A DNA stretch of 64,000 nt from Pristiophorus japonicus (Eukaryota), in assembly GCF_044704955.1 (NCBI RefSeq), contig NC_092007.1, forward strand, positions 5,022,001-5,086,000. The letters are read 5' to 3'. Positions 122-33,110 of the stretch are shown here, piece after piece. The translations under genes were made by a program, and so were the position numbers. The notes beneath the pieces were generated by a model. It was not told the origin of the DNA and did not search any database. It saw only the letters and a program-made list of their open reading frames with translations. The number at the start of each line of letters is the position of its first letter. The stretch's first letter is position 1.

Positions 122-127
122 TTTATT
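122..127 (-). promoter_or_regulatory. Candidate polyadenylation signal (AATAAA) of copy A
   Basis: AATAAA on the minus strand ~510 nt after the predicted stop; present in all units. Confidence 0.3.
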
Positions 128-638: not shown

Positions 639-3600
639 TCAGCTCTGACTGGTGGGAAATAACGTAATAAAAAAGTACTGGGTCAATTCAGCAATAAATA
701 CATCTGCAAATGTCTTCTCCTACCTCTATGACGAACAAAACGAGTTTCAATTGATAACAATGTCGATGAGGTACATCACCTAACAGAGCAACTAAGATTT
801 GCCCGCAATGATATTAGCCCCAGGAGCGGATTCTACCCGTTCCAGTCCAGCAATTCTTGCTCATATGCTGAAATTCTGACGACACGTTATTTTGAAATCT
901 CTCTTTATTACCCCACGAGTTGAAGTAATTATTCCCATACCCGTGTGAGTCTATTTCTTTCATCACCAAGACAATGATGGCAATCAGAATGAGAACGGCA
1001 GCAGCGGTTCTGATTGACATGGCGATTTTCCAAAATGATCCTGAAAATATTCAACAACAAAAAACACGCTCTTCATTATTGCTCTGATTAACCCAGGTTT
1101 CTCGATAGCATTTAACAACATGTATGGGACTATTAAGATAGAAATCAACTCACATTTATTTAGTGCTTTTCCAAACCTCGCAACCCACTTTACAGCCAAT
1201 GAAGTACTATGGAAGTTTATTCACTGTTGCACTGTAGGTAACGTGGCAGCTGTATTGCGCATAGCATGCTCCCACAAACAGCGATGAGATAAATAAGCAG
1301 ATAATCTCTTTCAGTATTACTGGTTGAGGGATAAATAATTGCCAAGGCATCGGAGAGCGCTGCGCCTGCTCGTCTTCAATCGATTCAGTATTACAGCATC
1401 CCTTAGAAAATGCAGCTATCCACATCGCATACTCCAATCTGCTCCTCCGTTATCCGATATCTTATTTCAGTCCATAAGTTGCGTTTAAAGTTATTCTGCG
1501 CCAATTGTCAGTATTTTGACACGTGATAGTTTGCTCAGAATATCAATAAAACTGACATTCGGCTGAAAAAACTGCGTGAAAATAAATTGAACTGAGCAAT
1601 TGTAAATTGAATGATGGACTGTGCCCCACTAATGTTACAGTGAGCGCAAATATGGTTTCATAGAGTGTGTCACTAATTCAGAAAGTTCTGTTTTATAAAC
1701 GATGACACATTCCTTCTAGTGTTTTATATTACACTTTCTATCTTCGTTAAAAAAGGCGACAATAATCAAATTCAGAAGACCAGAATATAAACTTGACGGG
1801 GATTATTCTCATCTGAATTTCGCGAGCAGCATGAACCAGAGCCAAACACTACTAAAATTAAGAATGGTATACGTCCTAAATTGCAAATAATCAGAGAAAA
1901 ATACAACATTACTGCATAGGAGGAGGACATTCGGCCCATCATGTTCCTGCCGGCCAATTTAGCATTATCCAGCCTAATTCCATTTTCAAGCTCATCGTCA
2001 TATCCAACTAAATGCTATGAGAGAGTGTGCCTCTAAATTCTTTCGGGCGGTGATTTGCAGAGCACGACCATCCTCTGGTGAAAGCATATCATCTCAAATC
2101 CCCTCTAATCCTTCTACAAATTACTTTAAATAAGTATGGTATTACGGACTCAGTGGAATTATTGCCTTCTCAGGGATACTCTGAAATAGCTGCAAGCCCT
2201 CCGGAGTGAAGCTGTGTGGCAAAGTTAAATCTGAGCATCGATCAAGTGATTGAGAGCCTGCAGCTCACTACCATTACAATGAAAGGAAACCAGACGTCAT
2301 AAAGTCTCCGATCAATTCAGAAGGTCTCGCTTGTTTAAAGATCATACGCTACCTTTACTGTTTAATGTTAACCCCTTCCTCTCTTCACAAGCACAGTGCG
2401 ACCATAACTTAATTCAGAAAATCAGTGATTAAATTTTACATTTTTCCAACAATTTTAAGATAGCAGACAGTCACTAACCAGACAATTACTCTACTGAAAT
2501 TAGCAATGGATTCAGTCCTCAATCATAGATCAGTAAGTTAATACAAGCTCAAATGGAACTGATATTTGCTGACACTAATTCTGTTCACTTAGTATCGGGC
2601 CAATGATGGAATAAACCAGCTATTTTAATCAAATTGCAGCAAATCTCAACACTCACCTGTTGAACAGATCTGATATTTGCCGACACTAACACCGTGTTCG
2701 TTCCATGCAACACAGGAGATATGGTGTCCTGTACCGGTTGGGTGGGTCAGTGTCAGAGAGCTCTGCACCAGGGAATTATTCATTGACCGGGTGGTGACTC
2801 CGAGACCTGGCATGTTTCTAGTGATGTTTCTTCCATTGACGCTCCAGGTGATGTTTGCCGGGGGCTTGGCTCTTACACTGCAGGTACAATGAAACCCACT
2901 CTCAAATCTGGTGCAGGTCGGGCCCCATACTATGGTGGGTTTAACTGAAAAAATAGACAGTTCCACTTAAGATGATTTTAATCATGCAGTTGCATTGTTT
3001 AAGTTAAACCAATTGGCGCTATTTGGAGAAGCACAGGAGTGAACACAAAGGCCGGCATTACCAATAAAAAAACTTGCATTTCAACTTGCATTCCAATCTC
3101 CAGTTCTGATGAAAGGTCCGCGGCCCGAATCGTTAACTCTGCCTTCTTTGCACAGATGCTGCCTGACCTGCTGAGTTTTCCAGCATTTTCAGATTTTATT
3201 CCAGATTCTAGCATCCGCAGTTTTTTGCTTTTTTTAATTTGCATTAATATAGCGCCGCTAACGTGGCAAAAATTCCCAATGAGCTTCAAAAGTTCACAGA
3301 AGACTACATCGGAAGTTTGGCACAGAAACGGTACAGTTGGCTCAACCACTCCATGTCTGAGTTAATGCTCCACTCGAGCCTCCTCCCGTCTTTCCTCATC
3401 TAAAGCTATCAGCATAACGCTCTATTCCCTTCTCCCTCATACGCTTTTTCAACATCACTTTACATGCATCTGTTCAATCAGCTTCAACCACTCGCTGTAA
3501 AGAAGTTCCTTCTGAATTCTCTCTGGGATATATCTTTTTGTCTACCCTATAAAAACCTTTCGTCATTTTAAAGATGTCAATTAGATCACTCCTCAGCCTT

Positions 3601-6600
3601 CTATTTTCAAGTGAAAAAAGACCCCAAAGAGCGTTAGCAAACAACATTTGATACGGATCATTCCTGTACCGTTACAAATGTAATTGGCTCACATCACACT
3701 GACATTGTACAGAAATCTGTGTGGATCTGTTGGCGGTGCTCAGGTTATTTTCAGCCACGCAATAATACTCGCCGTCATCTTCAGAACTAATGTTGTGAAA
3801 TGTGTGCTTCAGTTCACCGGTGGATGATCTGCTGATCTCAGTGACAACTCGGACCAATGTTAAATTGACGGGCTGGTCACCCAGAGCCCTGCAGTACAAT
3901 AATAATGAAGTGCCCTCCACTATTACGATAGAAGAATTGAAGCTTGGTTTCTCCAGTGCATCTGAAACACACGAGAGCATTGGTGTTATTGGAGAATATC
4001 GGAGCAGAAGAGTAAAGTCAATTTGGCAATTGAAGAATAATATTAAAGCCGATATGGTGGCTATATTGCCAAATCTAAATTTAAAAAGCCAGCCTATGAT
4101 TGTTGGCGCTGTACTGCTTAAGATTATTTCAAATTTAGACCAAATTTATCTCAACGTTTTATCCTCTTCACTTCAAACGTTTGTAGTGACTGCCTGGACG
4201 TGATTCTTTTCCACAGAAACATCAATCAAGCGGCCATTCCTCCAACAACAAGAACAGTGGCCTTTCTCATCACTTGAACAGAGCTGTTGAGGCGGATTGC
4301 AGGCTCCCGACCACCACCGCTGATAACTCGTCACATACACTTATGTTTCAGATGCTCTCTCGGTGCAACTATATCAGGAATTAGGAGCCTTTGGAATAAC
4401 ATTTGACATAAGTAGCATCTATGGAGCCTTCCAATGTTACTCCCTGGGTCTTTGTCAATGTGAAATAATACAACTCACAAGAAATGTTTGATAGTCAGTT
4501 CGACCCAATGGTTATAGGAATATATCTTACACTTCGAGTACGTTCCGCTATTCAATTAGATCATGGCTCATCCATATGGTAGCTCTGCCTACCCGCTTTT
4601 GCTTTATTCTTATTTTTAAAAACTATCCATCACATATGTTGTATATTTAATTATCTCGGCGAGCTATCACTCCACTGAGCATCAAGACAAGTTTGGATCC
4701 TGTTTATCAAAGGATGATGCAATGCAGGGTACAGCAGATACTTACTTTGAATGTGCAGTGTGAGAGTTTCTTGAACACTCCCCTCGACACCATCAACGAC
4801 AAGCTGACATCCCAGCTTTTTCCCATTGTGGTCTGGTGATGGGGTGAAGATGAATGTTGTTGAAATAGCCCATGATCCCTCCAACCTGTTGTCTCTGTAT
4901 TTGGAATTTTTAGTCTCTTGCAGCAAACGAACATTATCCTCGTCCTGAATCCACGTCAGTTCTGGATTGGCGGAGGGGCAGCTGGAGGTGACTGAGCAGG
5001 TTAAATATACGGGCTTTCCAGCAATCAATTCCCCAGGGACTGAAATCCATGACTTATGTGTAAGCAGTGAAAGGAATTCGTGTGACTGTGGATTTCAATA
5101 TAACACATGTGGAGGGAAGGGCCAGGCGGTTCAGTTCAATGTCTGAGATAATACCATGAGCAAAAATTTATATGTTTTCCACTTGATCTCTGCTATGGGA
5201 AGGAGCCGATTGTTAATTATTACTTACGGTCACAGAATCAATCGATTGATGCATGTGTTCATGAACTTAATGTCCTGCCACAATATGAATGAATTATTCA
5301 TGTGGGCTTGTTTCTGATCGGTCAGTCACCGCTCTGCAGCACACAATTATTTCAATTCAAATTAAGGTCAGAAAAAACATTCAAAACAGAGTCCGAGATT
5401 TGGTTCCTTGAGTATACCTGGGATATTCTTAGTCCAACGGCTCACTCTCACGTGGAACAGTTGATTTAGCCATTGCTTATTTTTATTCTTGCTTTTAATT
5501 CATTTTCTCTCATTTAGTCTCGCGATAGGAGTGCCACAACTAACCTTCAGGACGAGGGACACGCTTAACAAACCTGGTTTGTTACTGTTACCAACAGCGG
5601 GACAGTGCACAGCTATGAGAAGAAAGCAAGACCAGGTTGCGGGTTCAAGACCCATTTCAGAGACTTAAGCACAACCTGTAGCCTGACACTCCAGTGCAGT
5701 ACTGATGCATTGTCACAATGCCGGAGATTCCATTTTACGGATGAGATATTAACCTGTTCTCCTAATTTACCTCTCAAGTGTACATAACAGTTCGCACAGT
5801 ATTATTTTGAATGAGCCTTTGTCCTCGTTAACTTTGATTGATCGACGCGTTATCTGCAAGGCTGGTGGATGTTTTAAAAGACAAATACAGATGTCCTTCA
5901 GCCGTGGTGGGCCGAAGGGCCTCTTAATGTAATGTAAGATTAAATATTTCTATGATTGTATTTTATAACACACACCTGGATATTATTCAGTGTACCAGCC
6001 CTGCAGAGATGGCGTGTGACGTGGGCCAATGTCAACATGAAATCTTTCATTTTAGGCAAAAATTGAATGGCATTGGCGAGATGGAACATTAACTACAAAA
6101 CGAAAAATTCAAAATAACTTACTTAAAATAGAAAGATTGACAGGAGTTTTGGAACCGTATCCTTCTATCTGATCCTGGGAGTTCATGATCTTCAATATGA
6201 AGTAATATTCTCCTCCATCGCTCTCCCTGATGTCCTTTAACCGTAAGGAGCATTGCTTCTTTATAAAGTCGCCGGCTAACTCTGCCCTCCCTCGATAGTC
6301 ATGGTGCATATTGTCTGCATCTCTGGAATCATAGATAACCGAGACCCCTGGTGCATAAAGATGAGGACTCCCCTTTAACCACATACCCTGTGGATTGCGA
6401 CCATTCGTGGGATAGTCAAATCTACACGGGATCTTTGCACATGAACCCTTCACCGTCGATAAACTCCATGGTGTCGTCACAGACCATCGTGAACTACGTA
6501 CAACTGGTGAAGAAATAGAAATTAAACATCCATTGAAATCCCCAATATGAATACTTTCCCTCATCGTCAGGTTAAATAATATTACTTTAACCTTTGACGC

Positions 6601-6921
6601 CCACGAAAACATATTAATGAGTACCTCAATGAAAAGGCGTTAAATTTTAATTAAAACTCCTCCAATTCCATTAACTACTCCATTGAAAGCCGGCAAATCA
6701 GAAAGTAAATATTAAATCAATATGATAAATACATAAAGAAGTTCTGAATAAAACATATTAAAAGTGCAAATCACAAATTACTAGTTAAGCATGTACTATC
6801 TCTATAAAGTAAGAACGTTTTAATTGAACACAAAATGGAAATCGTTTCGAACATCAATTAGTAAACTGAACATTTTACCTTTACAGAATATCAGAATGGA
6901 GATAAATGTTAAACTCTTCAT
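639..6921 (-). CDS. Siglec-like Ig-superfamily receptor, copy A (7 coding exons; exon-3 acceptor mutated, so possibly a variant or pseudogene)
   Basis: Exons: 6879-6921 (MKSLTFISILIFCK, G|GTAAAA), 6123-6503 (V-set), 4746-5057 (C2), 3704-3961 (C2/I), 2657-2944 (C2), 941-1040 (TM), probable 639-648 (GQS*). Ig exons are all phase 1-1 with lengths divisible by 3. Boundaries are GT/AG except the exon-3 acceptor (AC at 5058-5059). Total 1392 nt, 463 aa. Confidence 0.85.
941..1040 (-). CDS. Copy A exon 6, transmembrane segment with Arg
   Basis: attttcag|GA gives in-frame GSFWKIAMSIRTAAAVLILIAIIVLVMKEIDSHG; GG|GTATGG donor. Confidence 0.82.
1150..1380 (-). mobile_element. DeuSINE/SacSINE-like 3' fragment (also in units B and C)
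   Basis: Matches the SINE bodies at 49.3-54.3 kb (cagccaatgaagtact, ctcccacaaacagc, gagggataaata). Confidence 0.7.
2657..2944 (-). CDS. Copy A exon 5, membrane-proximal Ig domain
   Basis: PTIVWGPTCTRFESGFHCTCSVRAKPPANITW...ISCVAWNEHG resembles the membrane-proximal domain of CD33-related Siglecs and MAG; ttttttcag acceptor and GTGAGT donor. Confidence 0.9.
3083..3245 (+). mobile_element. Penelope-like-element-derived short insertion with degenerate hammerhead ribozyme motif (second copy ~16638-16800)
   Basis: AGTT-CTGATGA-[GGTC cgc GGCC]-GAAT-CGTT-AACT followed by cacagatgctgcctgacctgctgag; flanked by AA(C/T)TTGCATT direct repeats; absent from copy C. Confidence 0.6.
3704..3961 (-). CDS. 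Copy A exon 4, Ig C2/I-set domain
   Basis: EGTSLLLYCRALG...ISSEDDGEYYCVAEN; tttcag acceptor and GTCAGT donor. Confidence 0.9.
4746..5057 (-). CDS. Copy A exon 3, C2-set Ig domain
   Basis: LTCSVTSSCPSANPELTW...FTPSPDHNGKKLGCQL, typical of Siglec domain 2; GTAAGT donor; acceptor is AC instead of AG. Confidence 0.85.
5620..5810 (+). mobile_element. tRNA-derived SINE 5' fragment (DeuSINE-like)
   Basis: B-box-like GGTTCAAGACCC followed by gacttaagcac...ctgacactccagtgcagtactga. Confidence 0.6.
6123..6503 (-). CDS. Copy A exon 2, Siglec-type V-set Ig domain
   Basis: GSCAKIPCRFDYP, W on the C strand, YRGRAELAGD, KQCSLRLKDIRESDGGEYYF; cttcaccag acceptor and GTAAGT donor. Confidence 0.92.
6879..6921 (-). 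CDS. Copy A exon 1, signal peptide
   Basis: ATG at 6921, hydrophobic MKSLTFISILIFCK, phase-1 GT donor; conserved in all three copies. Confidence 0.8.
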
Positions 6922-7299
6922 GGGTGGAACGGTTCACGATGTCAAAATGACAGAAATTGACTCAATCTCAGATATCACTAATCTAGTTCCAGATTCCGTT
7001 CGCCGGTAATATCCTGGAGTTCACAGATGACCGAATCAGAGTATCAGCAGGTCAGTTGAAAGCTATCCAACAAACATTCAACACCGTGGTTGCTCAAACA
7101 GCTATCACCACTCCTCGGATGTTGTTCATCAAAACTGCTGCAATTCTGGATCATTTCGAACGTGACCATGTCCTGTAGTAATTGGCCCGCAGTTACAGGA
7201 TATGCTGAGACCCCGCCTGTTGCTGATTAGCTCTGAGCAGAAATATACCAATTTCCCCTTCATCAGCACAGCTACAGGGCACGGGTGGCATTCTAGTTT

Positions 7300-7955
7300 G
7301 GAATACAGAATAAATGTTCGGACACTGAAATATGTAGAGGAACAAAGTGGCCTTGGAGTGCAAGTCCACCGATCCCTGAAGGTAGCAGGACAGGTAGATA
7401 AGCTGCTTAAGAAGGCATACGGAATACTAGCATTTATTAGTCAAGGTGCAGAATACAAGAACAAAGAGGTTATTCATGAACTGTATAAAACACTAATTGG
7501 ACCACTGCTAGAGTACTGTGTGCAGTTCTGGTCTTCACTTTACAGGAAAGATGTGATGCACCAGAGAGGGTATGTTGCCTTTAATGGAGAATCTTATATT
7601 TGAGGAACGGTACTATAGGCTGGGGTAGTATTCTTTGAAATAGATGAGGCTGAAGGAAGATTAAATTGAGCTGTATTACATTATGAGAGGCCTGGATAGA
7701 GTGGATAAGAAGGACCTACTTCCTTTAGCAGAGGGGTCAATAACGATGGGGCATAGATTAAAAGTAATTGGTAGGAGGTGTAGTGGGCATTTGAGGAGAA
7801 TTATTTTCAGCCAGAGGGTGATGGGGGACTGGAATCACTGCCTCAAAGCATGGTAGAGACAGAAACCCTCAGCATCTAAAAATTACATGGATGTGCACTT
7901 GAAGTGCTGTAACCTACAGGGATATGGAGCGAGAGCTGGAAATGGGATTAGGCTG
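7300..7955 (+). mobile_element. CR1 LINE 3' fragment (also ~20820-21475 and ~33490-34150)
   Basis: KAYGILAFISQGAEYKNKEVIHELYKTLIGPLLEYCVQFWS, the CR1 ORF2 C-terminus. Confidence 0.85.
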
Positions 7956-8119
7956 GCATCGCTGAAATTAACGGACTTATATCCAGGTTGCTGCAATGAA
8001 ACTTTTCTGATGATTCTGATTACAGTGCTGGAACTGTGAGTTGTGATTCAGCTTTTAGATTCGAGGGTCTATGTAGCTGGAAGCAATGTGGAAATTTGTC
8101 TACAGGAATATATCCCTTC

Positions 8120-8850
8120 ACCTTCTATGTTACAAGAAGGACATAGATGAATTGGAGAAGGTGCAAATCAGATTTTCAAAAAGTAGACCAGAAATGGGAG
8201 AATATAACCAGCAGGAAAGTCTGAACGGTCTGGCAAGCTTTCCTCTAGAAAAGAGAAGGTGGAGGGGTGACATAATAGAGGCCTGTAAAATGATGAAGGG
8301 GTTTGATAGGATAGATGAAGCAGAGATTTTCCACTTGTGCGGGGATCAAAACCAGAGTTCATCGATATGAGATAGTCATTCAGAAATAACAGAAGGAATT
8401 CAGGAGAACCTTATTTACCCAGAGAATGGTGAGAATGTGGAAGTTGCTACCACACGGAGGGATTGAGGCGAATAGTATAGATGTGTTTAAGAGGCAGCTA
8501 GATAGCTACATGAGGGAGAAAGGAATATGCTGCTGGATGAAATAAACTTGGGAGGAGAAAGCTCCGGTGGAGCATAAACGTTGCCTTGGACAAGTTGGGC
8601 CCAATTGCATGTTTCTTTGCTGCACATTTGATGTAATTAACCCTGAATTAATTGCATCAAGTTTGCTGAGTATCTCACTATATTCAAGGATGCGATAGAT
8701 AGATATTTGTAGTTTAGAGAATGAAGGCTATGTGGAGAGGGCGGGAATTTGCTAAGGTCGATGATCAGCTATGACCTCATTGAATGGCGGAGCAGGCTTG
8801 AGGGGCCATGTTGGCTACTCCTGCTACTATTTCTTATGTACTTTTGTTCT
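8120..8850 (+). mobile_element. CR1 LINE 3' fragments (also ~21640-22370 and ~36505-37245)
   Basis: YKKDIDELEKVQIRF...LEKRRWRGDIIEA; CR1-type 3' UTR ending ctatttcttatg. Confidence 0.8.
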
Positions 8851-11164: not shown

Positions 11165-11520
11165 CACCAGTTACCCACCTTCAACACTCACTCCCTCCAC
11201 CACCCTGGTGCACCGTCTTCAAGATGCACTGCAGCAACTCGCCAAGGCTTCTTCGGCAGCACCTCCCAAACCCGCCACTTCAAACACCTAGAAGGACAAG
11301 GGCAGCAGGCGCATGGGAACACGACCACCTCCAAGTTCCCCTCCCAGTCACACACCGTCCAGACTTGGAAATATATCGCCCGTTCTTTCAACGTCGCCGG
11401 GTCAAAATCCTGGAAAGTCCTCCACAACAGCGCTGTGATAGCACCTTCACCACACGGACTGCATCGGTTCAAGAAGGCAGCTCACCACCAATTTCTCAAG
11501 AGCAATAAGCAACGGGCAAT
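11165..11520 (+). mobile_element. LINE (CR1/L2 group) 3' end fragment; shorter copies at ~9563-9840, in unit B and at ~37935-38205
   Basis: Repeated KMHCSNSPRLLRQHLPNP...HGLHRFKKAAHH segment and shared tail gggatgggcaataaatg. Confidence 0.65.
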
Positions 11521-12044
11521 ATATTATGTCGTGCCACTGATAAAGAGTCAAACATAACTAATTACCCATTATTATAAAATATCTCAGAAAATTATTCAAT
11601 TGTTAAGCTTCTCTTGGGCTCAAATCGGGACCCTAATAAACGAGGTTGCATGTATGTTCCTGGGTTTTATTGACAGGCTGAACATAATGGGAAGATTCAA
11701 TTTTATTGGCATCATAACATCCTGGGAAAGCTTCACGATTTCAGTGGAAATAGTGAAGGAGGAAATTGTTGCCGAAAAGCATTTCCAATATAACAAAGTA
11801 GCTGGTATTACTCAGAAATATCCACGCTGTCCCAACCACATTTGCTGCATTGAGTAACAGGAGCATATTTCCACTATTCACTGCACTGTGTCTGACCGGG
11901 AGAAGGTGGAGGTTTATTTTGGATGTAAGTATAGCGTTCCACTCTCAGCATCTCTGAGCTCCAGTAACAAATATCAAAATAAATTAGTTGTGATGTGTTT
12001 TAATGAAACTATGACAAATTACAAGTTACATAACAGAATTATGC

Positions 12045-12620: not shown

Positions 12621-13089
12621 CTGGCCTTACCTAATTGAATTTGCAATTTTCTGCACAGTCTGATAATGAGCGGAATCTGATACAGACAGCAATACTTCAG
12701 AAACCACGCAGATGCATTGTTTCTTAAACACATGTTCCTAAATAGTACACGGCTTTTAAATGACCCTTTTGAAAACACAATAGTTTGTACAATATCTGTG
12801 TATTGTAATGGTAACTGATTAGAATTGACACTGAGCTGTGAAGGTTTATTATACTGTGTTGACAGATGCTGCCAAATTAATCCAATTAACTGTGGAGAAG
12901 TTCCTCATTGACCGCCAGAGTTGTCTAAGACGTTAACAGAGGGAGGTGTGTAATGCAAACAATCTTAACATTACTGGGGAAGATTGCTACTTTATTAAAG
13001 CACATCAACACTGTTTAAAAGTGACTGGAACCATTCAAGCCAACGGCATTTCAGGCATCTGTTTGGAGTGAAAACAAGTGTGGGATTGT

Positions 13090-13680: not shown

Positions 13681-14197
13681 TTATTTTGTTTAAAAAAAAC
13701 ACAGTAAACAGAACTGAAAATATTAGCGATTAATCTGCGAAATATGCTCATTTTCACAGAAATTGCAGGCATATGAACTTTAAAATCATTTAAATTTGCA
13801 GCATATTAACTGTAATCTTCATTCTTGAGATACCTTTCATATTTGTGAAAGTTTCAAACTTCCAGCGATTGCCGCCGGAACCTCTACACTTTGCGCCGAT
13901 TGGATGGATGCTGTCCATCTGCTAGCAATGTTTCTCTCCTGGTCTTGGCTCTGTAACAGAAAGCAGTGCGTTAGAAAAGGGTGTGAGGCCACTTTCTGTC
14001 CCAGAATAACCCTCTTTCTCGCTGCCCAGATCATTTTCAATCTTTCCCTACTCAATGATGGAAACATTCTGAGCGTTGCAACATGCAGGACCAATGAAAA
14101 GACGAACACGAAAATAACAGATGCCCCATCGAGCCAATCCCAAACAGTCAGGACGCAACAATGCCTCAGGATTGCAACTCTCCCTCTCGGCACCATG

Positions 14198-17100
14198 TCA
14201 GCTCTGACTGGTGAGAAATAACGTAATAAAAAAGTACTGGGTCAATTCAGCAATAAATACATCTGCAAATGTCTTCTCCTACCTCTATGACGAACAAAAC
14301 GAGTTTCAATTGATAACAATGTCGATGAGGTACATCACCTAACAGAGCAACTAAGATTTGCTCGCAATGATATTAGCCCCAGGAGCGGATTCTACCCGTT
14401 CCAGTCCAGCAATTCTTGCTCATATGCTGAAATTCTGACGACACGTTATTTTGAAATCTCTCTTTATTACCCCACGAGTTGCAGTAATTATTCCCATACC
14501 CGTGTGAGTCTATTTCTTTCATCACCAAGACAATGATGGCAATCAGAATGAGAACGGCAGCAGCGGTTCTGATTGACATGGCGATTTTCCAAAATGATCC
14601 TGAAAATATTCAACAACAAAAAACACGCTCTTCATTATTGCTCTGATTAACCCAGGTTTCTCGATAGCATTTAACAACATGTATGGGACTATTAAGATAG
14701 AAATCAACTCACATTTATTTAGTGCTTTTCCCAACCTCGCAACCCACTTTACAGCCAATGAAGTACGATGGAAGTTTATTCACTGTTGCACTGTAGGTAA
14801 CGTGGCAGCTGTATTGCGCATAGCATGCTCCCACAAACAGCGATGAGATAAATAAGCAGATAATCTCTTTCAGTATTACTGGTTGAGGGATAAATAATTG
14901 CCAAGGCATCGGAGAAGGATCCGCCTGCTCGTCTTCAATCGATTCAGTATTATAGCATCCCTTAGAAAATGCAGCTATACATATCGCATACTCGAATCTG
15001 CTCCTCCGTTATCCGATATCTTAATTCAGTCCATAAGTTGCGTTTAAAGTTATTCTGCGCCAATTGTCAGTATTTTGACACGTGATAGTTTGCTCAGAAT
15101 ATCAATAAAACTGACATTCGGCTGAAAAAACTGCGTGAAAATAAATTGAACTGAGCATTTGTAAATTGAATGATGGACTGTGTCCCACTAATGTTACAGT
15201 GAGCGCAAATATGGTTTCATAGAGTGTGTCACTAATTCAGAAAATTCTGTTTTATAAACGATGACACATTCCTTCTAGTGTTTTATATTACACTTTCTAT
15301 CTTCGTTAAAAAAGGCGACAATAATCAAATTCAGAAGACCAAAATATAAACTTGACGGGGATTATTCTCATCTGAATTTCGCGAGCAGCATGAACCAGAG
15401 CCAAACACTACTAAAATTAAGAATGGTATACGTCCTAAATTGCAAATAATCAGAGAAAAATACAACATTACTGCATAGGAGGAGGACATTCGGCCCATCA
15501 TGTTCCTGCCGGCCAATTTAGCATTATCCAGCCTAATTCCATTTTCAAGCTCATCGTCATATCCAACTAAATGCTATGGGAGAGTGTGCCTCTAAATTCT
15601 TTCGGGCGGTGATTTGCAGAGCACGACCATCCTCTGGTGAAAGCATATCATCTCAAATCCCCTCTAATCCTTCTACAAATTACTTTAAATAAGTATGGCA
15701 TTACGGACTCAGTGGAATTATTGCCTTCTCAGGGATACTCTGAAATAGCTGCAAGCCCTCCGGAGTGAAGCTGTGTGGCAAAGTTAAATCTGAGCATCGA
15801 TCAAGTGATTGAGAGCCTGCAGCTCACTACCATTACAATGAAAGGAAACCAGACGTCATAAAGTCTCCGATTAATTCAGAAGGACTCGCTTGTTTAACGA
15901 TCATACGCTACCTTTACTGTTTAATGTTAACCCCTTCCTCTCTTCACAAGCACAGTGCGACCATAACTTAATTCAGAAAATCAGTGATTACATTTTACAT
16001 TTTTCCAACAATTTTAAGATAGCAGACAGTCACTAACCAGACAATTACTCTACTGAAATTAGCAATGGATTCAGTCCTCAATCATAGATCAGTAAGTTAA
16101 TACAAGCTCAAATGGAACTGATATTTGCTGACACTAATTCTGTTCACTTAGTATCGGGCCAATGATGGAATAAACCAGCTACTTTAATCAAGCAAATCTC
16201 AACACTCACCTGTTGAACAGATCTGATATTTGCCGACTCTAACACCGTGTTCGTTCCATGCAACACAGGAGATATGGTGTCCTGTAGCGGTTGGGTGGGT
16301 CAGTGTCAGAGAGCTCTGCACCAGGGAATTATTCATTGACCGGGCGTTGACTCCGAGACCTGGCATGTTTCCAGTGATGTTTCTTCCATTGACGCTCCAG
16401 GTGATGTTTGCCGGGGGCTTGGCTCTTACACTGCAGGTACAATGAAACCCACTCTCAAATCTGGTGCAGGTCGGGCCCCATACTATGGTGGGTTTAACTG
16501 AAAAAATAGACATGTTCGACTTAAGATGATTTTAATCATGCAGTTGCATTGTTTAAGTTAAACCAATTGGCGCTATTTGGAGAAGCACAGGAGTGAACAC
16601 AAAGCCCGGCATTACCAATAAAAATAACTTGCATTTCAACTTGCATTCCAATCTCCAGTTCTGATGAAAGGTCCGCGGCCCGAATCGTTAACTCTGCCTC
16701 CTTTGCACAGATGCTGCCTGACCTGCTGAGTTTTGCAGCAATTTCAGATTTTATTCCAGATTCTAGCATCCGCAGTTTATTGCTTTTTTTAATTTGCATT
16801 AATATAGCGCCGCTAACGTGGCAAAAATTCCCAATGAGCTTCAAAAGTTCACAGAAGACTACATCGGAAGGTTGGCACAGAAACGGTACAGTTGGCTCAA
16901 CCACTCAATGTCTGAGTTAATGCTCCACTCGAGCCTCCTCCCGTCTTTCCTCATCTAAAGCTATCAGCATAACGCTCTATTCCCTTCTCCCTCATACGCT
17001 TTTTCAACATCACTTTACATGCATCTGTTCAATCAGCTTCAACCACTCGCTGTAAAGAAGTTCCTTCTGAATTCTCTCTGGGATATATCTTTTTGTCTAC

Positions 17101-20100
17101 CCTATAAAAACCTTTCGTCATTTTAAAGATGTCAATTAGATCACTCCTCAGCCTTCTATTTTCAAGTGAAAAAAGACCCCAAAGAGCGTTAGCAAACAAC
17201 ATTTGATACGGATCATTCCTGTACCGTTACAAATTTAATTGGCTCACATCACACTTACATTGCACAGAAATCTGTGTGGATCTGTTGGCGGTGCTCAGGT
17301 TATTTTCAGCCACGCAATAATACTCGCCGTCATCTTCAGAACTAATGTTGTGAAATGTGTGCTTCAGTTCACCGGTGGATGATCTGCTGATCTCAGTGAC
17401 AACTCGGACCAATGTTAAATTGACGGGCTGGTCACCCAGAGCCCTGCAGTACAATAATAATGAAGTGCCCTCCACTATTACGATAGAAGAATTGAAGCTT
17501 GGTTTTTCCAGTACATCTGAAACACACGAGAGCATTGGTGTTATTGGAGAATATCGGAGCAGAAGAGTAAAGACAATTTGGCAATTGAAGAATAATATTA
17601 AAGCCGATATGGTGGCTATATTGCCAAATCTAAATTTAAAAAGCCAGCCTATGATTGTTGGCGCTATACTGCTTAAGATTATTTCAAATTTAGACCAAAT
17701 TTATCTCAACGTTTTATCCTCTTCACTTCAAACGTTTGTTGTGACTGCCTGGACGTGATTCTTTTCCACAGAAACATCAATCAAGCGGCCATTCCTCCAA
17801 CAACAAGAACAGTGGCCTTTCCCATCACTTGAACAGAGCTGTTGAGGCGCATTGCAGGCTCCCGACCACCACCGCTGATAACTCGTCACATACACTTATG
17901 TTTCAGATGCTCTCTCGGTGCAACTATATCAGGAATTAGGAGCCTTTGGAATAACATTTGACATAAGTAGCATCTATGGAGCCTTCCAATGTTACTCCCT
18001 GGGTCTTTGTCAATGTGAAATAATACAACTCACAAGAAATGTTTGATAGTCAGTTCGACCCAATGGTTATAGGAATATATCTTACACTTCGAGTACGTTC
18101 CGCTATTCAATTAGATCATGGCTCATCCATATGGTAGCTCTGCCTACCCGCCTGTGCTTTATCCTTATTTTTAAAAACTATCCATCACATATGTTGTATA
18201 TTTAATTATCTAGGCGAGCTATCACTCCACTGAGCATCAAGACAAGTTTGGATCCTGTTTATCAAAGGATGATGCAATGCAGGGTACAGCAGATACTTAC
18301 TTTGAATGTGCAGTGTGAGAGTTTCTTGAACACTCCCCACGACACCATCAACGACAAGCTGACATCCCAGCTTTTTCCCATTGTGGTCTGGTGATGGGGT
18401 GAAGATGAATGTTGTTGAAACAGCCCATGATCCCTCCAACCTGTTGTCTATGTATTTGGAATTTTTAGTCTCTTGCAGCAAACGAACATTATCCTCGTCC
18501 TGAATCCACGTCAGTTCTGGATTGGCGGAGGGGCAGCTGGAGGTGACTGAGCAGGTTAAATGTACGGGCTTTCCAGCAATCAATTCCCCAGGGACTGAAA
18601 TCCATGACTTATCTGTAAGCAGTGAAAGGAATTCTTGTGACTGTGGATTTCAATATAACACATGTGGAGGGAAGGGTATGTCTGAGATAATACCATGAGC
18701 AAAAATGTATATGTTTTCCACTTGATCTCTGCTGTGGGAAGGAGCCGATTGTTAATTATTACTTACGGTCACAGAATCAATCGATTGATACATGTGTTCA
18801 TGAACTTAATGTCCTGCCACAATATGAATGACTTATTCATGTGGGCTTGTTTCTGATCGGTCAGTCACCGCTCTGCAGCACACAATTATTTCAATTCAAA
18901 TTGAGGTCAGAAAAAACATTCAAAACAGAGTCCCAGATTTGGTTCCTTGAGTGTACCTGGGATATTCTTAGTCCAACGGCTCACTCTCACGTGGAACAGT
19001 TGATTTAGCCATTGCTTATTTTTATTCTTGCTTTTAATTCATTTTCTCTCATTTAGTCTCGCGATAGGAGTGCCACAACTAACCTTCAGGACGAGGGACA
19101 CGCTTAACTAACCTGGTTTGTTACTGTTACCAACAGCGGGACAGTGCACAGCTATGAGAAGAAAGCAAGACCAGGTTGCGGGTTCAAGACCCATTTCAGA
19201 GACTTAAGCACAACCTGTAGCCTGACACTCCAGTGCAGTACTGATGCATTGTCACAATGCCGGAGATTCCATTTTACGGATGAGATATGAACCTGTTCTC
19301 CTAATTTACCTCTCAAGTGTACATAACAGTTCGCGCAGTATTATTTTGAATGAGCTTTTGTCCTCGTTAACTTTGATTGATCGAAGCGTTATCTGCAAGG
19401 CTGTTGGATGTTTTAAAAGACAAATACAGATGTCCTTCAGCCGTGGTGGGCCGAAGGGCCTCTTAATGTAATGTAAGATTAAATATTTCTATGATTGTAA
19501 TTTATAACACACACCTGGATATTATGCAGTGTACCAGCCCTGCAGAGATGGCGTTTGACGTGGGCCAATGTCAACATGAAATCTTTCATTTTAGGCAAAA
19601 ATTGAATGGCATTGGCGAGATGCAACATTAACTACAAAAGGAAAAATTCAAAATAACTTACTTAAAATAGAAAGATTGACAGGAGTTTTGGAACCGTATC
19701 CTTCTATCTGATCCTGGGAGTTCATGATCTTCAATATGAAGTAATATTCTCCTCCATCGCTCTCCCTGATGTCCTTTAACCGTAAGGAGCATTGCTTCTT
19801 TATAAAGTCGCCGGCTAACTCTGCCCTCCCTCGATAGTCATGGTGCATATTGTCTGCATCTCTGGAATCATAGATAACCGAGACCCCTGGTGCATAAAGA
19901 TGAGGACTCCACTTTAAGCACATACCCTGTGGATTGCGACCATTCGTGGGATAGTCAAATCTACACGGGATCTTTGCACATGAACCCTTCACCGCCGATA
20001 AACTCCATGGTGTCGTCACAGACCATCGTGAACTACGTACAACTGGTGAAGAAATAGAAATTAAACATCCATTGAAATCCCCAATATGAATACTTTCCCT

Positions 20101-20440
20101 CATCGTCAGGTTAAATAATATTACTTTAACCTTTGACGCCCACGAAAACATACTAATGAGTATCTCAATGAAAAGGCGTTAAATTTTAATTAAAACTCCT
20201 CCAATTCCATTAACTACTCCATTGAAAGCCGGCAAATCAGAAAGTAAATATTAAATCAATATGATAAATACATAAAGAATTTCTGAATAAAACATATTAA
20301 AAGTTAAGCATGTACTATCTCTATAAAGTAAGAATGTTTTAATTGAACACAAAATGGAAATCGTTTCGAACATCAATTAGTAAACTGAACATTTTACCTT
20401 TACAGAATATCAGAATGGAGATAAATGTTAAACTCTTCAT
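14198..20440 (-). CDS. Siglec-like Ig-superfamily receptor, copy B (all splice sites intact, ~463 aa)
   Basis: Exons 20398-20440, 19662-20042, 18301-18612, 17259-17516, 16210-16497, 14500-14599, probable 14198-14207. All GT/AG, no stops, ~99% identical to copy A. Confidence 0.88.
14500..14599 (-). CDS. Copy B exon 6, transmembrane segment with Arg
   Basis: Same as copy A TM exon. Confidence 0.82.
16210..16497 (-). CDS. Copy B exon 5, Ig domain
   Basis: GPTCTRFESGFHCTCSV...ISCVAWNEHG; AG acceptor and GTGAGT donor. Confidence 0.9.
17259..17516 (-). CDS. Copy B exon 4, Ig domain
   Basis: EDDGEYYCVAEN; AG acceptor and GTAAGT donor. Confidence 0.9.
18301..18612 (-). CDS. Copy B exon 3, C2-set Ig domain
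   Basis: Intact cttacag acceptor (18613-18614) and GTAAGT donor. Confidence 0.9.
19662..20042 (-). CDS. Copy B exon 2, V-set Ig domain
   Basis: As copy A but QGMCLKWS instead of QGMWLKGS. Confidence 0.92.
20398..20440 (-). CDS. Copy B exon 1, signal peptide
   Basis: Identical to copy A exon 1. Confidence 0.8.
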
Positions 20441-26400: not shown

Positions 26401-27736
26401 CAGATGCTGCCAAATTAATCCAATTAACTATGGAGAAGTTCCTCATTGACCGCCAGAGTTGTCTAAGACGTTAACAGAGGGAGGTGTGCAATGCAAACAA
26501 TCTTAACATTACTGGGGAAGATTGCTACTTTATTAAAGCACATCAACACTGTTTAAAAGTGACTGGAACCATTCAAGCCAACGGCATTTCAGGCATCTGT
26601 TTGGAGTGAAAACAAGTGTGGGATTGTAAATTTCACAAACGCAAGGATGTTATGCCAACCCTTTATAAAATATCGGATTGGCCTCAACTGGAGAATTCAG
26701 TCCAATTCTGGGCATCGCACATTAGGAAGGACGTGAAGGCCTGAGAGAGGGTGCAGAAAATATAGACGAGAATAGTCCCAATGACGAGGGACTTCAGTTA
26801 CGTGGAGAGACTGGAGAAGCTGGGGTTGTTCTCCTTAGAGCAGAGACGTTGGAGAGGAGATTTGACAGTGGTGTTCAGAATCAAAAGTAGATAGAGAGAA
26901 ATTGTTCCCATTGGAGGAAGGGTCAAGAACCAGAGGACACAGATTTAAGATGATTGCCAGAAGAACCAATGGCGATATGAGGAAAAAATATTACGCAGCG
27001 AGTGGTTAGGAGCTGGAATGCACTGCCTGGACGGGTGGTGGAGGCAGATTCAATCGTGGCTTTCAAAAGAGAATTGGATATGTACCTGAAGGAGAATAAA
27101 TGCAAGGCTACAGGTAAAGGGCGGGGCAGTGGGATTGGCTGAAATGCTCTTGCAGAGATCCGGCACGGACTAGAAGGGGGCCAATGACCTCCTTTTTTGC
27201 TGTAACGATTTTAGAATTTTATTTTGTTTAAAAAAAAACACAGTAAACAGAACTGAAAATATTAGCGATTAATCTGCGAAATATGCTCATTTTCACAGAA
27301 ATTGCAGGCATATGAACTTTAAAATCATTTAAATTTGCAGCATATTAACTGTAATCTTCATTCTTGAGACACCTTTCATATTTGTGAAAGTTTCAAACTT
27401 CCAGCGATTGCCGCCGGAACCTCGACACTTTGCGCCGATTGGATGGATGCTGTCCATCTGCGAGCAATGTTTCTCTCCTGGTCTTGGCTCTGTAACAGAA
27501 AGCAGTGCGTTAGAAAAGGGTGTGAGGCCACTTTCTGTCCCAGAATAACCCTCTTTCTCGCTGCTCAGATCATTTTCAATCTTTCCCTACTCAATGATGG
27601 AAACATTCTGAGCGTTGCAACATGCAGGACCTATGAAAAGACGAACACGAAAATAACAGATGCCCCATCGAGCCTATCCCAAACAGTCAGGACGCAACAA
27701 TGCCTCAGGATTGTTACTTTCCCTCTCGGCACCATG

Positions 27737-30700
27737 TCAGCTCTGACTGGTGAGAAATAACGTAATAAAAAAGTACTGGGTCAATTCAGCAATAAATACA
27801 TGTGCAAATGTCTTCTCCTACCTCTATGACGAACAAAACGAGTTTCAATTGATAACAATGTCGATGAGGTACATCACCTAACAGAGCAACTAAGATTTGC
27901 CCGCAATGATATTAGCCCCAGGAGCGGATTCTACCCGTTCCAGTCCAGCAATTTTTGCTCATATGCTGAAATTCTGACGACACGTTATTTTGAAATCTCT
28001 CTTTATTACCCCACGAGTTGAAGTAATTATTCCCATACCCGTGTGAGTCTATTTCTTTCATCACCAAGACAATGATGGCAATCAGAATGAGAACGGCAGC
28101 AGCGGTTCTGATTGACATGGCGATTTTCCAAAATGATCCTGAAAATATTCAACAACAAAAAACACGCTCTTCATTATTGCTCTGATTAACCCAGGTTTCT
28201 CGATAGCATTTAACAACATGTATGGGACTATTAAGATAGAAATCAACTCACATTTATTTAGTGCTTTTCCCAACCTCGCATCCCATTTTACAGCCAATGA
28301 AGTACGATGGAAGTTTATTCACTGTTGCACTGTAGGTAACGTGGCAGCTGTATTGCGCATAGCATGCTCCCACAAACAGCGATGAGATAAATAAGCAGAT
28401 AATCTCTTTCAGTATTACTGGTTGAGGGATAAATAATTGCCAAGGCATCGGAGAAGGATCCGCCTGCTCGTCTTCAATCGATTCAGTATTACAGCATCCC
28501 TTAGAAAATGCAGCTATCCACATCGCATACTCCAATCTGCTCCTCCGTTATCCGATATCTTAATTCAGTCCATAAGTTGCGTTTAAAGTTATTCTGCGCC
28601 AATTGTAAGTATTTTGACACGTGATAGTTTGCTCAGAATATCAATAAAACTGACATTCGGCTGAAAAAACTGCGTGAAAATAAATTGAACTGAGCATTTG
28701 TAAATTGAATGATGGACTGTGCCCCACTAATGTTACAGTGAGCGCAAATATGGTTTCATAGAGTGTGTCACTAATTCAGAAAGTTCTGTTTTATAAACGA
28801 TGACACATTCCTTCTAGTGTTTTATATTACACTTTCTATCTTCGTTAAAAAAGGCGACAATAATCTAATTCAGAAGACCAGAATATAAACTTGACGGGGG
28901 TTAATCTCATCTGAAATTCGCGAGCAGCATGAACCAGAGCCAAACACTACTAAAATTAAGAATGGTATACGACCCTAAATTGCAAATAATCAGAGAAAAA
29001 TAAAACATTACAGCATAGGAGGAGGACAGTCGGCCCATCATGTTCCTGTCGGTCAATTAAGCATTATCCAGCTAATTCCATTGTCAAGCTCATCGTCATA
29101 TCCAACTAAATGCTATGGGAGAGTGTGCCTCTAAAGTCTTTCGGGCGGTGATTTGCAGACCACGACCATCCTTTGGTGAAAGCATATCATCTCAAATCCC
29201 CTCTAATCCTTCTACAAATTACTTTAAATAAGTATGGTATTACGGACTCAGTGGAATTATTGCCGTCTCAGGGATACTCTGAAATAACTGCAAGCCTTGC
29301 GTAGTTAAGCTGTATGGCCAAGTTAAATCTGAGCATCTATCAAGTGATTGAGAGACTGCAGCCAGCTACCATTAAAATGAAAGGAAACTAGACGTCATAA
29401 AGTCTCCAATTAATTCAGAAGGTCTCGCTTGTTTAACGATCATACGCTACCTTTACTGTTTAATGTTAACCCCTGCCTCTCTTCACAAGCACAGTGCGAC
29501 CATAACTTAATTCAGAAAATCAGTGATTAAATTTTACATTTTTCCAACAAATTTAAGATAGCAGCCAGTCACGAACCAGACAATTACTCTACTGAAATTA
29601 GCAATGGATTCAGTCCTCAATCATAGATCAGTAAGTTAATACAAGCTCAAAGGAACTGATATGTGCTGACACTAGCTCTGTTCACTTAGTATCGATCCAA
29701 CGATGGAATAAACCAGCTACTTTCATCAAATTGCAGCAAATCTCAACACTCACCTGCTGAAGAGATCTGATATTTGCCGACACTAACACCGTGTTCGTTC
29801 CCTGCAACGCAGGAGATGTGGTGTCCTGTACCAGTTGGGTGGGTCAGTGTCAGAGAGCTCTGCACCAGGGAATTATTGACCGCCCTGGCGGTGACTCCGA
29901 GACCTGGCATGTTTCCAGTGGTGTTTCTCCCATTGACGCTCCAAGTGATGTTTGCAGGGGGGGGTGGCTCTGACACTGCACGTACGATGAAACCCACTCT
30001 CAAATCTGGTGAAGATCGGGCCGCATACTATGGTGGGCTTAACTGAAAAAATAGAGGGATCCACTTAAGTTCCTTTTAATCGTGCAGTTGCTTGTTTAAC
30101 TAGAACCAATTGGTGCTATTTTCGATCCACATGAGTTAATGAAAGGTCCGTCATTAAAAACAACAGTAACTTGATGTTATATAGTGCCGCAAACGTAATT
30201 AAAACTTTCAAGGATTTTCAGAGGTTACATAAGATTACCTCGGATATACAGCACAGAAACAAGCCATTCGGTGCAACCACTACATGCCCGTGTTTATGCT
30301 CCACTGGAGCCGCTTCCCCATCTTTCTCCATCTAAATCTATCAACATATATCCTTTTCCCTCATATGCTTGTACAGCTTCCCCTTAAATGCATTGATATT
30401 TTCACATCAACCACATCCTGTTGTGGCGAGTTACGATATCCCATCACACTTTGGATCAAGAAGTTTCTTTTGAATGACCCATTGGAGATTGTGGTAACTA
30501 TTTTATACTGATGGCCTCTAGTCCACAAGTGCAAACACTCTTTTTGTTTCTAATTTATCAAAACCTTTCGTCACTAATTAGGTCACACTTCAGCCTTTTT
30601 TTCAAGCAAAAAGAGATCCCGAAAACTGTTACCAAAGAACATTTGAGACGGATCATTAATATGCTTTTATACATTTAATAGGTTGGCATAGCACTTACAT

Positions 30701-33110
30701 TGTATACAAATCTGCTTGGATCTGTTTGCGGTGACCAGGTTATTTTCAGCCATACAATAATACTCTCCGTCATCCTCAGAACTAATGCTGTGAAATATCG
30801 TCTTCAGTTCACCAGTGGAAGATCTGCTGATCTCAGTGCCACCTCGGACCAGTGTTAAACTGACCAGCGGGTCACCCAGGGCCCTGCAGTACATTAATAA
30901 TGAACTGCCCTCCACTGTTACTATAGAGGAATTGAAGCTTGGTTTCCCCAGTGCATCTGAAACACAAGAGAGAATTGCCTTTATTGGGGAATTTCGGAGC
31001 CCCAGTGCAAAGGCAACTTGGCGATCGAAGAATAATATGAAGCAGATATGCTGGCTATATTGCCAAATATAAATTGAAAAGCCAGATCGTGATCGTCGAT
31101 GCGAGGACGCTTAAGATTATTTCAAATGTAAACACGTTTTAAATCAACGTCTTTACCTCTTCTCTTCAAAAAGTTGTAGTGACTACCTGAAATTAATCCT
31201 ATTCCACCGATACATCAATCAAGGGTCCATTCCTCCCAGAGCAAGAAGAATAGGCTTTCCCATTATATAAGCAAAGCTGTTGAGGACAATTGTAGGATGC
31301 CGACCACAGCCCCAGCTAACTCGTAATATTTCATTCACTCTCTGGCTGCAACGGTATCAGTAATTAGGAGCCTTTTTGACATAAATATCAAGGATTTATT
31401 CATTGTTGGCCTATTTCTGATCGTTCAGTCACCGCTCTGCAGCACACAAGTGTTTCAACTCAATTTGCAGTCAGAAAAAACATAGAAAACGCAGTCGCAG
31501 TTTGGGTTTCTTGCTTGTACCTGGGATAGAATCTAGGATATTCTTAGTCCAATGGCTCACTCTCACGTGGCACAGTTGATTTACTCTTTGCTGCGTTTAA
31601 CTTTTGCTTATAATTCATTTTTTCTCATTTAGTCTCGTGATAGGAATGCCACAAATAATCTTCAGGGAGAGGGGCAAGCTTAGCTAACCTGGTTTGTTAC
31701 CATTAAAAGCAGCGCGACAGTGCACAGCTGTCAGAAGAAAGCAAGACCAGATTATGGGTTCAAGCCCCATTTCAGATTCTTAAGCACAACCTGTCGCCTA
31801 ACTCTCCACTGCAATAGTGATGCAATGTCACAATGCCGGAGATTCCATTTTACAGATGAGACATTAAACTGATGTCCTGTCTTTCCTCTCAACTTCCCGT
31901 GGCATTATTTTGAAAGACCCTTTGTCCTTGTTAAATTTGATTGATCGACGCACTACCTGCAAGGCTGGTGGATGTTTTAAAAGACAATTACAGATGTCCT
32001 TGAAGCAGACTAATTTGCAGGTTTATGGAGACAATGCGACAGAGTGCGTCTCAATTGGCTAGCTCCTTCAGGCGTGGTGGGCCGAATGGCCCCTTAATAT
32101 ACTGTAAGATTATATGGTTCTATGATTGTATTGTATAACACACACCTGGATATTATTCAATGTACCAGCACTGCAGAGATGGCCTGTGACGTAGGCCAAT
32201 GGTAACACAAAATATTTCCATTTTAGGCTAAGATTGAGTGGCATTTGCGAGGGTGAACATGAACTACAAAAAGGACCAATTAAAATTAACTTACATAAAA
32301 TAGAAAGGTTAATAGGAGCTTCGTAACCGCATCATTGTCTCTTATCCTGGGCGTTCCTGAGCTTCAATATAAAATAATATTCTCCTTCATCGCTCTCGCT
32401 GATGTCCTTTAACCGTAAGGAGCATTGCTTCTTCACAAAGTCGCCAGTCAACTCTGCTCGCCCTTGATAATCACGGTGTATATTGTCTGTACCTCTTGAA
32501 TCATAGATAACCTAGATAACCGAGACCCCTGGATTATCAGGAACAGGACCCCCTTTTATCCACATCCCCTGTGGACTGTGGCCATAGGTGGAATAGTTAA
32601 ATGTTCACGGAATCTCTGCACATGAACCGTTCACCGCTCACACTCTCCACATTATCTTCACAGACCATCCTGAAGTATGTACAACTGTTGAAGAAATAGA
32701 ATTTAAATACGCATTGAAATCCCCAATAATATAGCAATTAATACTTACTCTGACCGACAGGTTAAATACCTTAACTTTTAAACACCCACTAAAATATATT
32801 CATTAGTACCTCAAAGAAAAGGCGTGACATTTTAATTAAAACTCTTCAAATTCCATTAACTATTCCATTGAAAGCCGATAAATCAGAGAGTAAATATTAA
32901 ATCAATTTTATAAAAAAAACGTTGAAAATTGTGAATAAAATAAACATTAAAGGTGCAATTCACAAATTATTAACTAAACATGTACAATCTCTACAAATAA
33001 TAAATTTGTAAATTTGACACGAAATGGAAATCGCTCCTGACATCAATGATTAAACTGAATAGTTTATCTTCGCCAAATACCAGAATGCAGATAACGGTAC
33101 TGCTCTTCAT
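27737..33110 (-). pseudogene. Siglec-like pseudogene, copy C (chimeric, diverged 5' part)
   Basis: Exon 1 (33068-33110) has its donor changed GT>AT. V exon (32295-32684) has in-frame stops at 32638-40, 32605-07, 32512-14 and 32332-34. Exon 3 is deleted. Exon 4 (30699-30956) is intact. Exon 5 (29754-30042) has a +1 frameshift in the G run 29957-29964 and has lost cysteines. TM exon (28039-28138) is intact. Confidence 0.9.

Follow-up and report, generated by a model that had tools for sequence, protein, structure and literature searches.

A 64,000-nucleotide stretch of DNA from the squalomorph shark Pristiophorus japonicus (NCBI RefSeq assembly GCF_044704955.1, contig NC_092007.1, positions 5,022,001 to 5,086,000 of the forward strand; hereafter the window) carries a tandem array of genes for receptors of the Siglec type, all on the minus strand. 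Each intact gene would encode a protein with a signal peptide, a V domain like those of sialoadhesin and myelin-associated glycoprotein (MAG), three C2 domains, a transmembrane (TM) helix that contains an Arg, and a very short tail that lacks tyrosines. The structure of the array, the origin of this C-terminus and the place of the genes among their relatives are described below.

A tandem array with two intact genes and a chimeric pseudogene

Gene models were built exon by exon; searches used single exons or natural proteins, and no joined protein served as a query. Copy 1 opens with a signal-peptide exon (6879..6921; MKSLTFISILIFCK, followed by the phase-1 donor GTAAAA) and continues through a Siglec-type V-set exon (6123..6503), C2 exon 1 (4746..5039), C2 exon 2 (3704..3961), the membrane-proximal C2 exon 3 (2657..2944) and a TM exon (941..1040), which ends in phase 2 at the donor GTATGG. 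In the modelled tail end, this donor is joined to an acceptor at 648 and reads Gly-Gln-Ser before a stop (TGA, 641-639). Copy 2 (14198..20440, minus strand) repeats this exon set at an offset of 13,519 to 13,559 bp: signal 20440-20398, V 20042-19662, C2 18594-18301, 17516-17259 and 16497-16210, TM 14599-14500 and modelled stop 14200-14198, all with canonical splice sites. Across copies 1 and 2 every acceptor is AG and every donor GT (all twelve junctions), and the immunoglobulin (Ig) exons show the phase 1-1 seen in genes of the Ig superfamily. Since the exon coordinates agree with those of an initial annotation made from the sequence alone, the gene model is reproducible.

The left half of the window is a minus-strand direct repeat with a period of ∼13.54 kb and start-to-start spacings of 13,559 and 13,539 bp. 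Units 1 (1-13558) and 2 (13559-27097) are 98.2% identical from end to end, with 182 mismatches and 11 gaps over 13,580 alignment columns, and the tandem expansion proposed in the initial annotation is thus borne out. Recent unequal crossing-over expanded the array. Unit 3 is a mosaic. Its first part, 27098-30156, matches units 1 and 2 at 96% identity, and beyond 30156 identity falls abruptly to only 78–82% (30539-31375 and 31384-34296); after an insertion, 36518-38663 is still 77% identical to the array. This abrupt fall places the end of the 13.5-kb array within the last gene, in the intron that precedes its third C2 exon. The array is young and tandem, and the window holds its end.

Copy 3, which spans this junction, is a chimera in which the 5′ half of an older paralogue is joined to a 3′ half of the array type, and it is dead. 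Sequence comparison identified in its 3′ part (27098..30156, minus strand) a fossil tail exon (27336-27489), the modelled stop (27739-27737), the TM exon (28138-28039) and a C2 exon 3 (∼29752-30043) with a +1 frameshift and two Cys lost. Its old 5′ part (30157..34296, minus strand) contains C2 exon 2 (30699-30956), a V pseudo-exon (32295-32684) with three in-frame stops, and a signal exon, starting from the ATG at 33110, in which the donor has changed from GT to AT. One of the V stops arose by a TGT>TGA change at the second Cys of the CxxxxC motif, and another lies inside a 9-bp duplication. C2 exon 1 is deleted, as positions 4393-5281 of unit 1 (889 bp) have no counterpart. The initial annotation had counted three gene copies; copies 1 and 2 are intact and have the exons it described, but copy 3, with its stops, lost donor, deleted C2 exon and frameshift, is a pseudogene.

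The Siglec-type ectodomain

When the V exon was compared with PDB sequences, the top 17 matches were all Siglecs. MAG (2e-14) and sialoadhesin (5e-14) matched best, Siglec-8, -7, -10, -5 and CD33 were weaker (7e-9 to 3e-6), and Siglec-15 was weaker still (1e-3). Pfam assigned the exon to V-set (4.5e-10) and Ig_CD22 (1.2e-7; 32.5 bits against a cutoff of 27), and the three exons that follow to Ig/C2 families: C2-set_2 for C2 exon 1, Ig_2 (1.5e-10) for C2 exon 2 and ig (1.6e-5) for C2 exon 3. For the V exon, AlphaFold modelling from an alignment of 25 sequences gave a mean predicted local distance difference test (pLDDT) score of 90.5. Foldseek searches with this model gave sialoadhesin (template modeling score 0.84–0.91) and Ig domain 1 of MAG (0.84) as the best matches, with Siglec-7, Siglec-8 and CD33 at ∼0.75 (0.73–0.78) and PILR at ∼0.8 next. 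These comparisons agree with the Siglec scaffold assigned in the initial annotation: the V domain is clearly Siglec-type and, in sequence and predicted fold, is closest to MAG and sialoadhesin.

The domains that follow point the same way. Domain 2 (C2 exon 1) matches MAG domain 2 at 2.7e-10, its extra Cys (SSCPS) aligning with the corresponding residue of MAG (DNCPE); C2 exon 2 matches MAG domain 4 at 1e-13; and C2 exon 3 shares 58–67% identity with its counterpart in shark relatives. The cysteines of the V domain (GSC-AKIP-C plus QCSL) have the Siglec layout. Together with SSCPS in domain 2 they follow the Siglec pattern, in which an intra-sheet B-E disulfide would form within V and an interdomain disulfide would link V to domain 2.

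The canonical F-strand Arg, which in Siglecs binds the carboxylate of sialic acid, is replaced by Ile in copies 1, 2 and 3 (YYFILKI, compared with YNFRFEI in sialoadhesin), and in the MAG and CD22-like references too the aligned residue is Arg. The cysteine layout and the missing sialic-acid Arg had both been recorded in the initial annotation, and both hold. The change from Arg to Ile is older than the split between copies 1 and 2 and copy 3's old part (∼20% divergence), all of which have the Ile. The closest relative, a Heptranchias perlo protein designated P0170, keeps the Arg (YYFRLNI), so that the Ile of the window genes represents an independent loss. Ligand probably does not bind through the canonical sialic-acid pocket.

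The transmembrane arginine and the fossil inhibitory tail

The TM exon, SFWKIAMSIRTAAAVLILIAIIVLVMKEIDSH, is identical in all three copies. A basic residue lies within the helix (AMSIRTAAAVLILIAIIVLVM), with the Arg about five residues into the hydrophobic stretch, in its outer third. Receptors coupled to FcR-gamma, among them Fc-alpha-RI, LILRA2 and GPVI, have their Arg at this depth, four or five residues into the helix; Siglec-14 likewise uses an Arg, with DAP12. The short tail of the spliced model ends in SHGQS-stop, and it contains no immunoreceptor tyrosine-based inhibitory motif (ITIM), no immunoreceptor tyrosine-based switch motif (ITSM) and no tyrosine.

No ITIM was found downstream of the TM exon in any frame. 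Searches with the tails of 18 relatives (tblastn) recovered a last tail exon 3′ of each copy (acceptors 392, 13950 and 27489). In copy 1 this fossil ITIM/ITSM exon (224..392, minus strand; 224 is approximate) reads RFRRQSLEV, stop, NFHKYERCLKNEDYS, stop, YAAN. Compared with the sequence of Heptranchias P0167 (ENVLYAAVKVSNVRKHEKYLQNEESSEYA), it is broken by two in-frame stops and has Arg in place of the ITIM Tyr. The fossil exon of copy 2 (13797..13950, minus strand) has identical stops. A decayed first cytoplasmic exon, at 490..648 in copy 1 (minus strand; 490 is approximate), supplies the Gly-Gln-Ser-stop in the spliced frame; in its ancestral frame it reads VRADMVPRGRVAILRHCCV, compared with TRDTVSVPATNNDSVTYAAV in relatives (P0167), and aligned by eye its Tyr has become His. 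Since the lesions of the fossil tail are common to all three copies, the tail was dead before the amplification. These decayed exons mark the window genes as descendants of an inhibitory, ITIM/ITSM-bearing ancestor, with no capacity left to encode an ITIM tail.

We considered whether the genes might nonetheless be inhibitory receptors with an overlooked ITIM tail, the TM exon being spliced to Tyr-bearing exons. Most relatives do have ITIM plus ITSM-like tails, and recognisable tail exons lie downstream. For the three copies, however, this explanation is largely refuted and can be given very little credence: the downstream tail exons contain in-frame stops, both ITIM tyrosines are replaced (Tyr>His and Tyr>Arg), the spliced frame ends after three codons, and the units hold no further tail-like sequence (18 relatives' tails, E up to 5), the Arg-containing TM exon and the fossil last exon being the only TM or tail exons recovered. 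An Arg in the TM segment, the absence of an ITIM and an activating-type architecture had all been put forward in the initial annotation, and all three stand, with the fossil ITIM exons as additional support for the last. Splicing to a long ITIM-containing tail, the main route by which that annotation expected it might be refuted, is removed, as no frame encodes an ITIM.

Two further features of this region were recorded. A hydrophobic open reading frame (ORF) at 2014-1775 was tried as an alternative TM exon and rejected, having no homologue. Reading through the TM-exon donor adds 45 codons with no ITIM, and the resemblance of this extension to the tail of a Cetorhinus relative, P0026, is too weak to decide its status. 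Minus-strand poly(A) signals are present at 909 and 127 in the copy 1 region; the first of these, an AATAAA at 904-909, lies 32 bases 3′ of the TM-exon donor and within the read-through frame, where it may be a chance occurrence or mark an alternative short 3′ end.

A different possibility is that the proteins are anchored in the membrane without signalling, serving as adhesion molecules or decoys, with the Arg at the membrane edge and no adaptor bound. It gains something from how close the Arg lies to the start of the hydrophobic stretch (about five residues in), and from the nearest known V domains, since MAG and sialoadhesin are adhesion-type Siglecs. Against it, the hydrophobic stretch without the Arg is just ∼16 residues long (TAAAVLILIAIIVLVM), too short for a membrane-spanning helix, and an Arg occurs at equal depth in the elasmobranch proteins P0026, P0056 and P0162, always in company with loss of the ITIM tail. 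We regard non-signalling proteins as improbable.

Relatives in sharks and rays and the status of the array

A full HMMER scan of 1.84 billion representatives returned 146 proteins at E values up to 1e-10. The closest matches with a single V domain are RefSeq predictions from sharks, among whose automatic names are "myelin-associated glycoprotein-like", "sialoadhesin-like" and "Siglec-5/8/12/13/14". The species represented belong to Chiloscyllium, Heterodontus, Stegostoma, Mustelus, Cetorhinus, Heptranchias, Scyliorhinus and Carcharodon, together with the rays Hypanus, Hemitrygon and Mobula. Family and exon types are shared between the window genes and these MAG-like or Siglec-5, -8, -12, -13 and -14-like proteins (for example the Heptranchias perlo XP_067831... 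cluster, P0170/P0167). The nearest, P0170, is 62% identical in V and 50–67% identical in the C2 exons. All close relatives are elasmobranch proteins, consistent with the cartilaginous fish host that the initial annotation had deduced. In word searches (P0036, P0170 and the TM plus tail of P0026), the sole Pristiophorus japonicus protein returned was P0165, a paralogue with 39% identity in V, and no protein encoded by the window was returned; the search with the P0026 TM plus tail found only P0026 itself.

Two of the predicted proteins have unusual structures. P0170, annotated as "Siglec-5 isoform X2", has a C-terminus (FQTFANMKAISRMRSSVNTPQLNL) that corresponds to the tail exons in another frame, the out-of-frame translation in the window being FETFTNMKGVSRMKITVNMLQI; it thus seems that this isoform omits the TM exon and changes frame. 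P0162, a Scyliorhinus torazame protein of 722 aa named "hemicentin-1-like", has its TM segment of the activating type (FWEILLRIGAAAAVLVV) mid-protein, at residue 172, and looks like a fused model of two adjoining Siglec-like genes.

In a maximum likelihood tree of V domains (28 rows), in which the references were MAG, CD22-like sequences and one sialoadhesin, the window copies and P0170 fell in an elasmobranch-only clade (support 93/87), apart from the tetrapod and teleost MAG and CD22-like clades. In the same tree, the V domains of two Mustelus proteins, P0056 with a TM Arg and P0009 with ITIMs, are sisters (support 100/97) and form an activating/inhibitory pair in another shark. The canonical Arg is present in the references (sialoadhesin, MAG and CD22-like), in P0170, Chiloscyllium P0004, Mustelus P0009 and P0056, Cetorhinus P0026, Mobula and Heptranchias P0016. 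The same column holds Ala in Heterodontus P0005, Lys in Stegostoma P0006, Thr in two Scyliorhinus proteins, and Ile, Ser or Leu in nearly the whole of a second subclade, which includes P. japonicus P0165. The Arg was thus lost repeatedly within the elasmobranch family.

In most other relatives the TM helix is uncharged and leads into SxTYAxV, VLYAxV and xEYAxI motifs. Homologues of the TM exon with its Arg were found in annotated short-tail proteins of Cetorhinus (P0026, XP_078392811; GSFWRIILPIRVVSTVFILFAILVIM, continuing to NSHR) and Mustelus asterias (P0056; GPFWDFIFPIRVAVAIVVFFALVALV, with NSHRYNR at its end), and P0162 contains FWEILLRIGAAAAVLVVLLAVVMK followed by SHH. In Mobula, P0182 combines a TM Arg with a short tail, and its sister P0184 has Ile in place of this Arg and a longer tail that includes one ITIM-like motif. 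The initial annotation had called the cluster lineage-specific, which is not supported: the family extends across sharks and rays, the combination of TM Arg and short tail recurs in Cetorhinus, Mustelus, Scyliorhinus torazame and Mobula, and V domains that lack the canonical Arg occur in many species.

Taken together, these data lead us to favor, with moderate confidence, the interpretation that the array consists of activating-type members of an elasmobranch-wide paired-receptor family that belongs to the Siglecs. In this history an ancestor with ITIM and ITSM gained a TM Arg and a frame-truncated tail, with its ITIM exons left as fossils; tandem amplification followed, and one copy died. The Arg may pair with the TM Asp of an adaptor that bears an ITAM (immunoreceptor tyrosine-based activation motif), of the FcR-gamma or DAP12 type, so that ligand binding would produce Syk-type activation and mirror the ITIM-bearing relatives in the way that Siglec-14 mirrors Siglec-5. 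Within the window, no inhibitory partner with a near-identical ectodomain is present.

Several points weigh against this interpretation. The gene models come from genomic DNA, the 3′ end of the mRNA is a modelled one, and adaptor coupling is deduced from the position of the Arg. The modelled splice also puts the stop in a non-terminal exon, so that transcripts could be open to nonsense-mediated decay should splicing still include the fossil last exon. Among 1,364 coding bases, 15 differ between copies 1 and 2, of which 13 are replacement and 2 silent differences, and the resulting ratio of replacement to silent differences per site (pN/pS) is 1.9, a value that is not significant (Fisher p = 0.54). 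Exons are no more conserved than non-coding sequence (1.10% and 1.37% divergence, respectively). There is thus no sign of purifying selection in these sequences since the two copies duplicated, and diversifying selection and drift are indistinguishable. In addition, the V domain of copy 2 carries a W41C substitution at a core Trp shared without exception by the 36 other V domains in the alignment.

Some of these observations would also be expected if the genes were recent duplicates drifting to pseudogenes, intact through youth and either unexpressed or non-functional, with Arg loss, tail loss and the death of copy 3 as parts of one decay process. Divergence equal in exons and non-coding sequence, the pN/pS of 1.9 and W41C all fit, copy 3 is dead already, and at 1.3% divergence frames that are intact by chance are not unlikely. 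Other evidence opposes it. The TM-Arg short-tail design is common to annotated genes in four other elasmobranch species and is therefore a maintained type, not an accident; copies 1 and 2 keep twelve of twelve splice junctions intact; and the three copies have identical TM exons. Over the older divergence between copy 1 and the old part of copy 3, both with Ile, pN/pS is below 1 (0.73 for V and 0.47 for C2 exon 2; 0.63 for the sum, p = 0.03), with the proviso that copy 3 is a pseudogene, and this modestly suggests that the Arg-less ectodomain was formerly under constraint. Decay is accordingly possible, though on balance we think it unlikely. W41C is accompanied in the V exon of copy 2 by G44W (19911-19922, codons 41-44), so that two replacements lie no more than 10 bases apart; a compensating shift or a micro-conversion might account for them.

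The window as a whole is vertebrate DNA with many fragments of long interspersed nuclear elements (LINEs); it has ∼42% G+C and zero N, and no Rfam match was found anywhere in it. Three LINE copies have ORFs for an APE endonuclease and a reverse transcriptase (Pfam Exo_endo_phos and RVT_1), at 38755-42680 (minus strand), 44113-46332 (plus strand) and 56560-59285 (plus strand), the first of them (38.7–42.7 kb) placed where the similarity of unit 3 to the array stops. At ∼49740-54210, both strands have long open frames of degenerate short repeats (∼10 residues each), with ALPQYCPSDS along one strand and GAVLRECxTV along the opposite one; they resemble a tandem repeat of the minisatellite type rather than a gene. 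An intact single-exon ORF at 62866-63915 (minus strand) encodes a rhodopsin-type G protein-coupled receptor of 349 aa, closest to chemerin-like receptor 1 (PDB 7ykd, 3.6e-68) and then to C3a and formyl-peptide receptors; this chemoattractant-receptor gene lies ∼29 kb away from the Siglec-like array.

Primates are known to have Siglecs in activating and inhibitory pairs, as in Siglec-5/14 (PMC4042635) and in Siglec-11/16, which has been shaped by gene conversion (PMC5701461). Like the shark genes, Siglec-14 and Siglec-16 combine a Siglec V domain and C2 domains with a basic TM residue and a short tail without ITIM, derive from inhibitory relatives, and lie in a tandem cluster subject to gene conversion or unequal crossing-over (PMC4042635, PMC5701461, PMC6288428). 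They differ in that the shark V domain is nearer to MAG and sialoadhesin than to CD33-related Siglecs and falls in an elasmobranch-only clade, and in that the shark genes arose independently and have four Ig domains and an Arg nearer the outer end of the helix. Loss of the essential Arg likewise has precedents in great-ape Siglec-5 and in human Siglec-XII (SIGLEC12), which has kept the Siglec fold (PMC6288428); unlike the activating-type shark genes, Siglec-XII retains an inhibitory tail. Such a loss need not end all glycolipid binding (PMC12953582). MAG (Siglec-4) and sialoadhesin (Siglec-1), which give the best V matches, have five and 17 Ig domains, respectively, compared with four in the window genes, which also differ from both in having a TM Arg and no canonical Arg. 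Despite the likeness of domain 2, with its extra Cys, and of C2 exon 2 to MAG, the separate V clade and the four Ig exons in place of five indicate that the window genes are not MAG orthologues.

Reviews of fish Siglecs, which are based on teleosts, list only Siglec-1, CD22, MAG and Siglec-15, and no CD33-related Siglecs (PMC7226832). Our literature search on Siglecs in sharks, elasmobranchs and Chondrichthyes found no description of the family, and one on ITAM adaptors in cartilaginous fish found nothing usable. The initial annotation saw in the cluster a candidate for an undescribed immune system. This goes too far, as the family is already in RefSeq under automatic names and the pattern is that of familiar paired receptors. 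A bolder proposal would be that sharks and rays evolved their own fast-turnover paired-receptor system on a MAG/sialoadhesin-like scaffold, analogous to the CD33-related Siglecs, in which Arg-less activating members act as "counter-trap" sensors for a non-sialic, probably pathogen-derived ligand; we hold this to be rather unlikely.

As far as sequence allows a judgement, the shark genes are an ordinary but instructive case of paired-receptor evolution. The locus and its relatives indicate that cartilaginous fishes have a multigene family of the Siglec type, with inhibitory and activating members and repeated loss of the canonical Arg. The finding extends a familiar paired-receptor principle and reveals no new kind of system; the window provides a clean snapshot of an activating receptor arising from an inhibitory one, which should be useful to comparative immunology and glycobiology.

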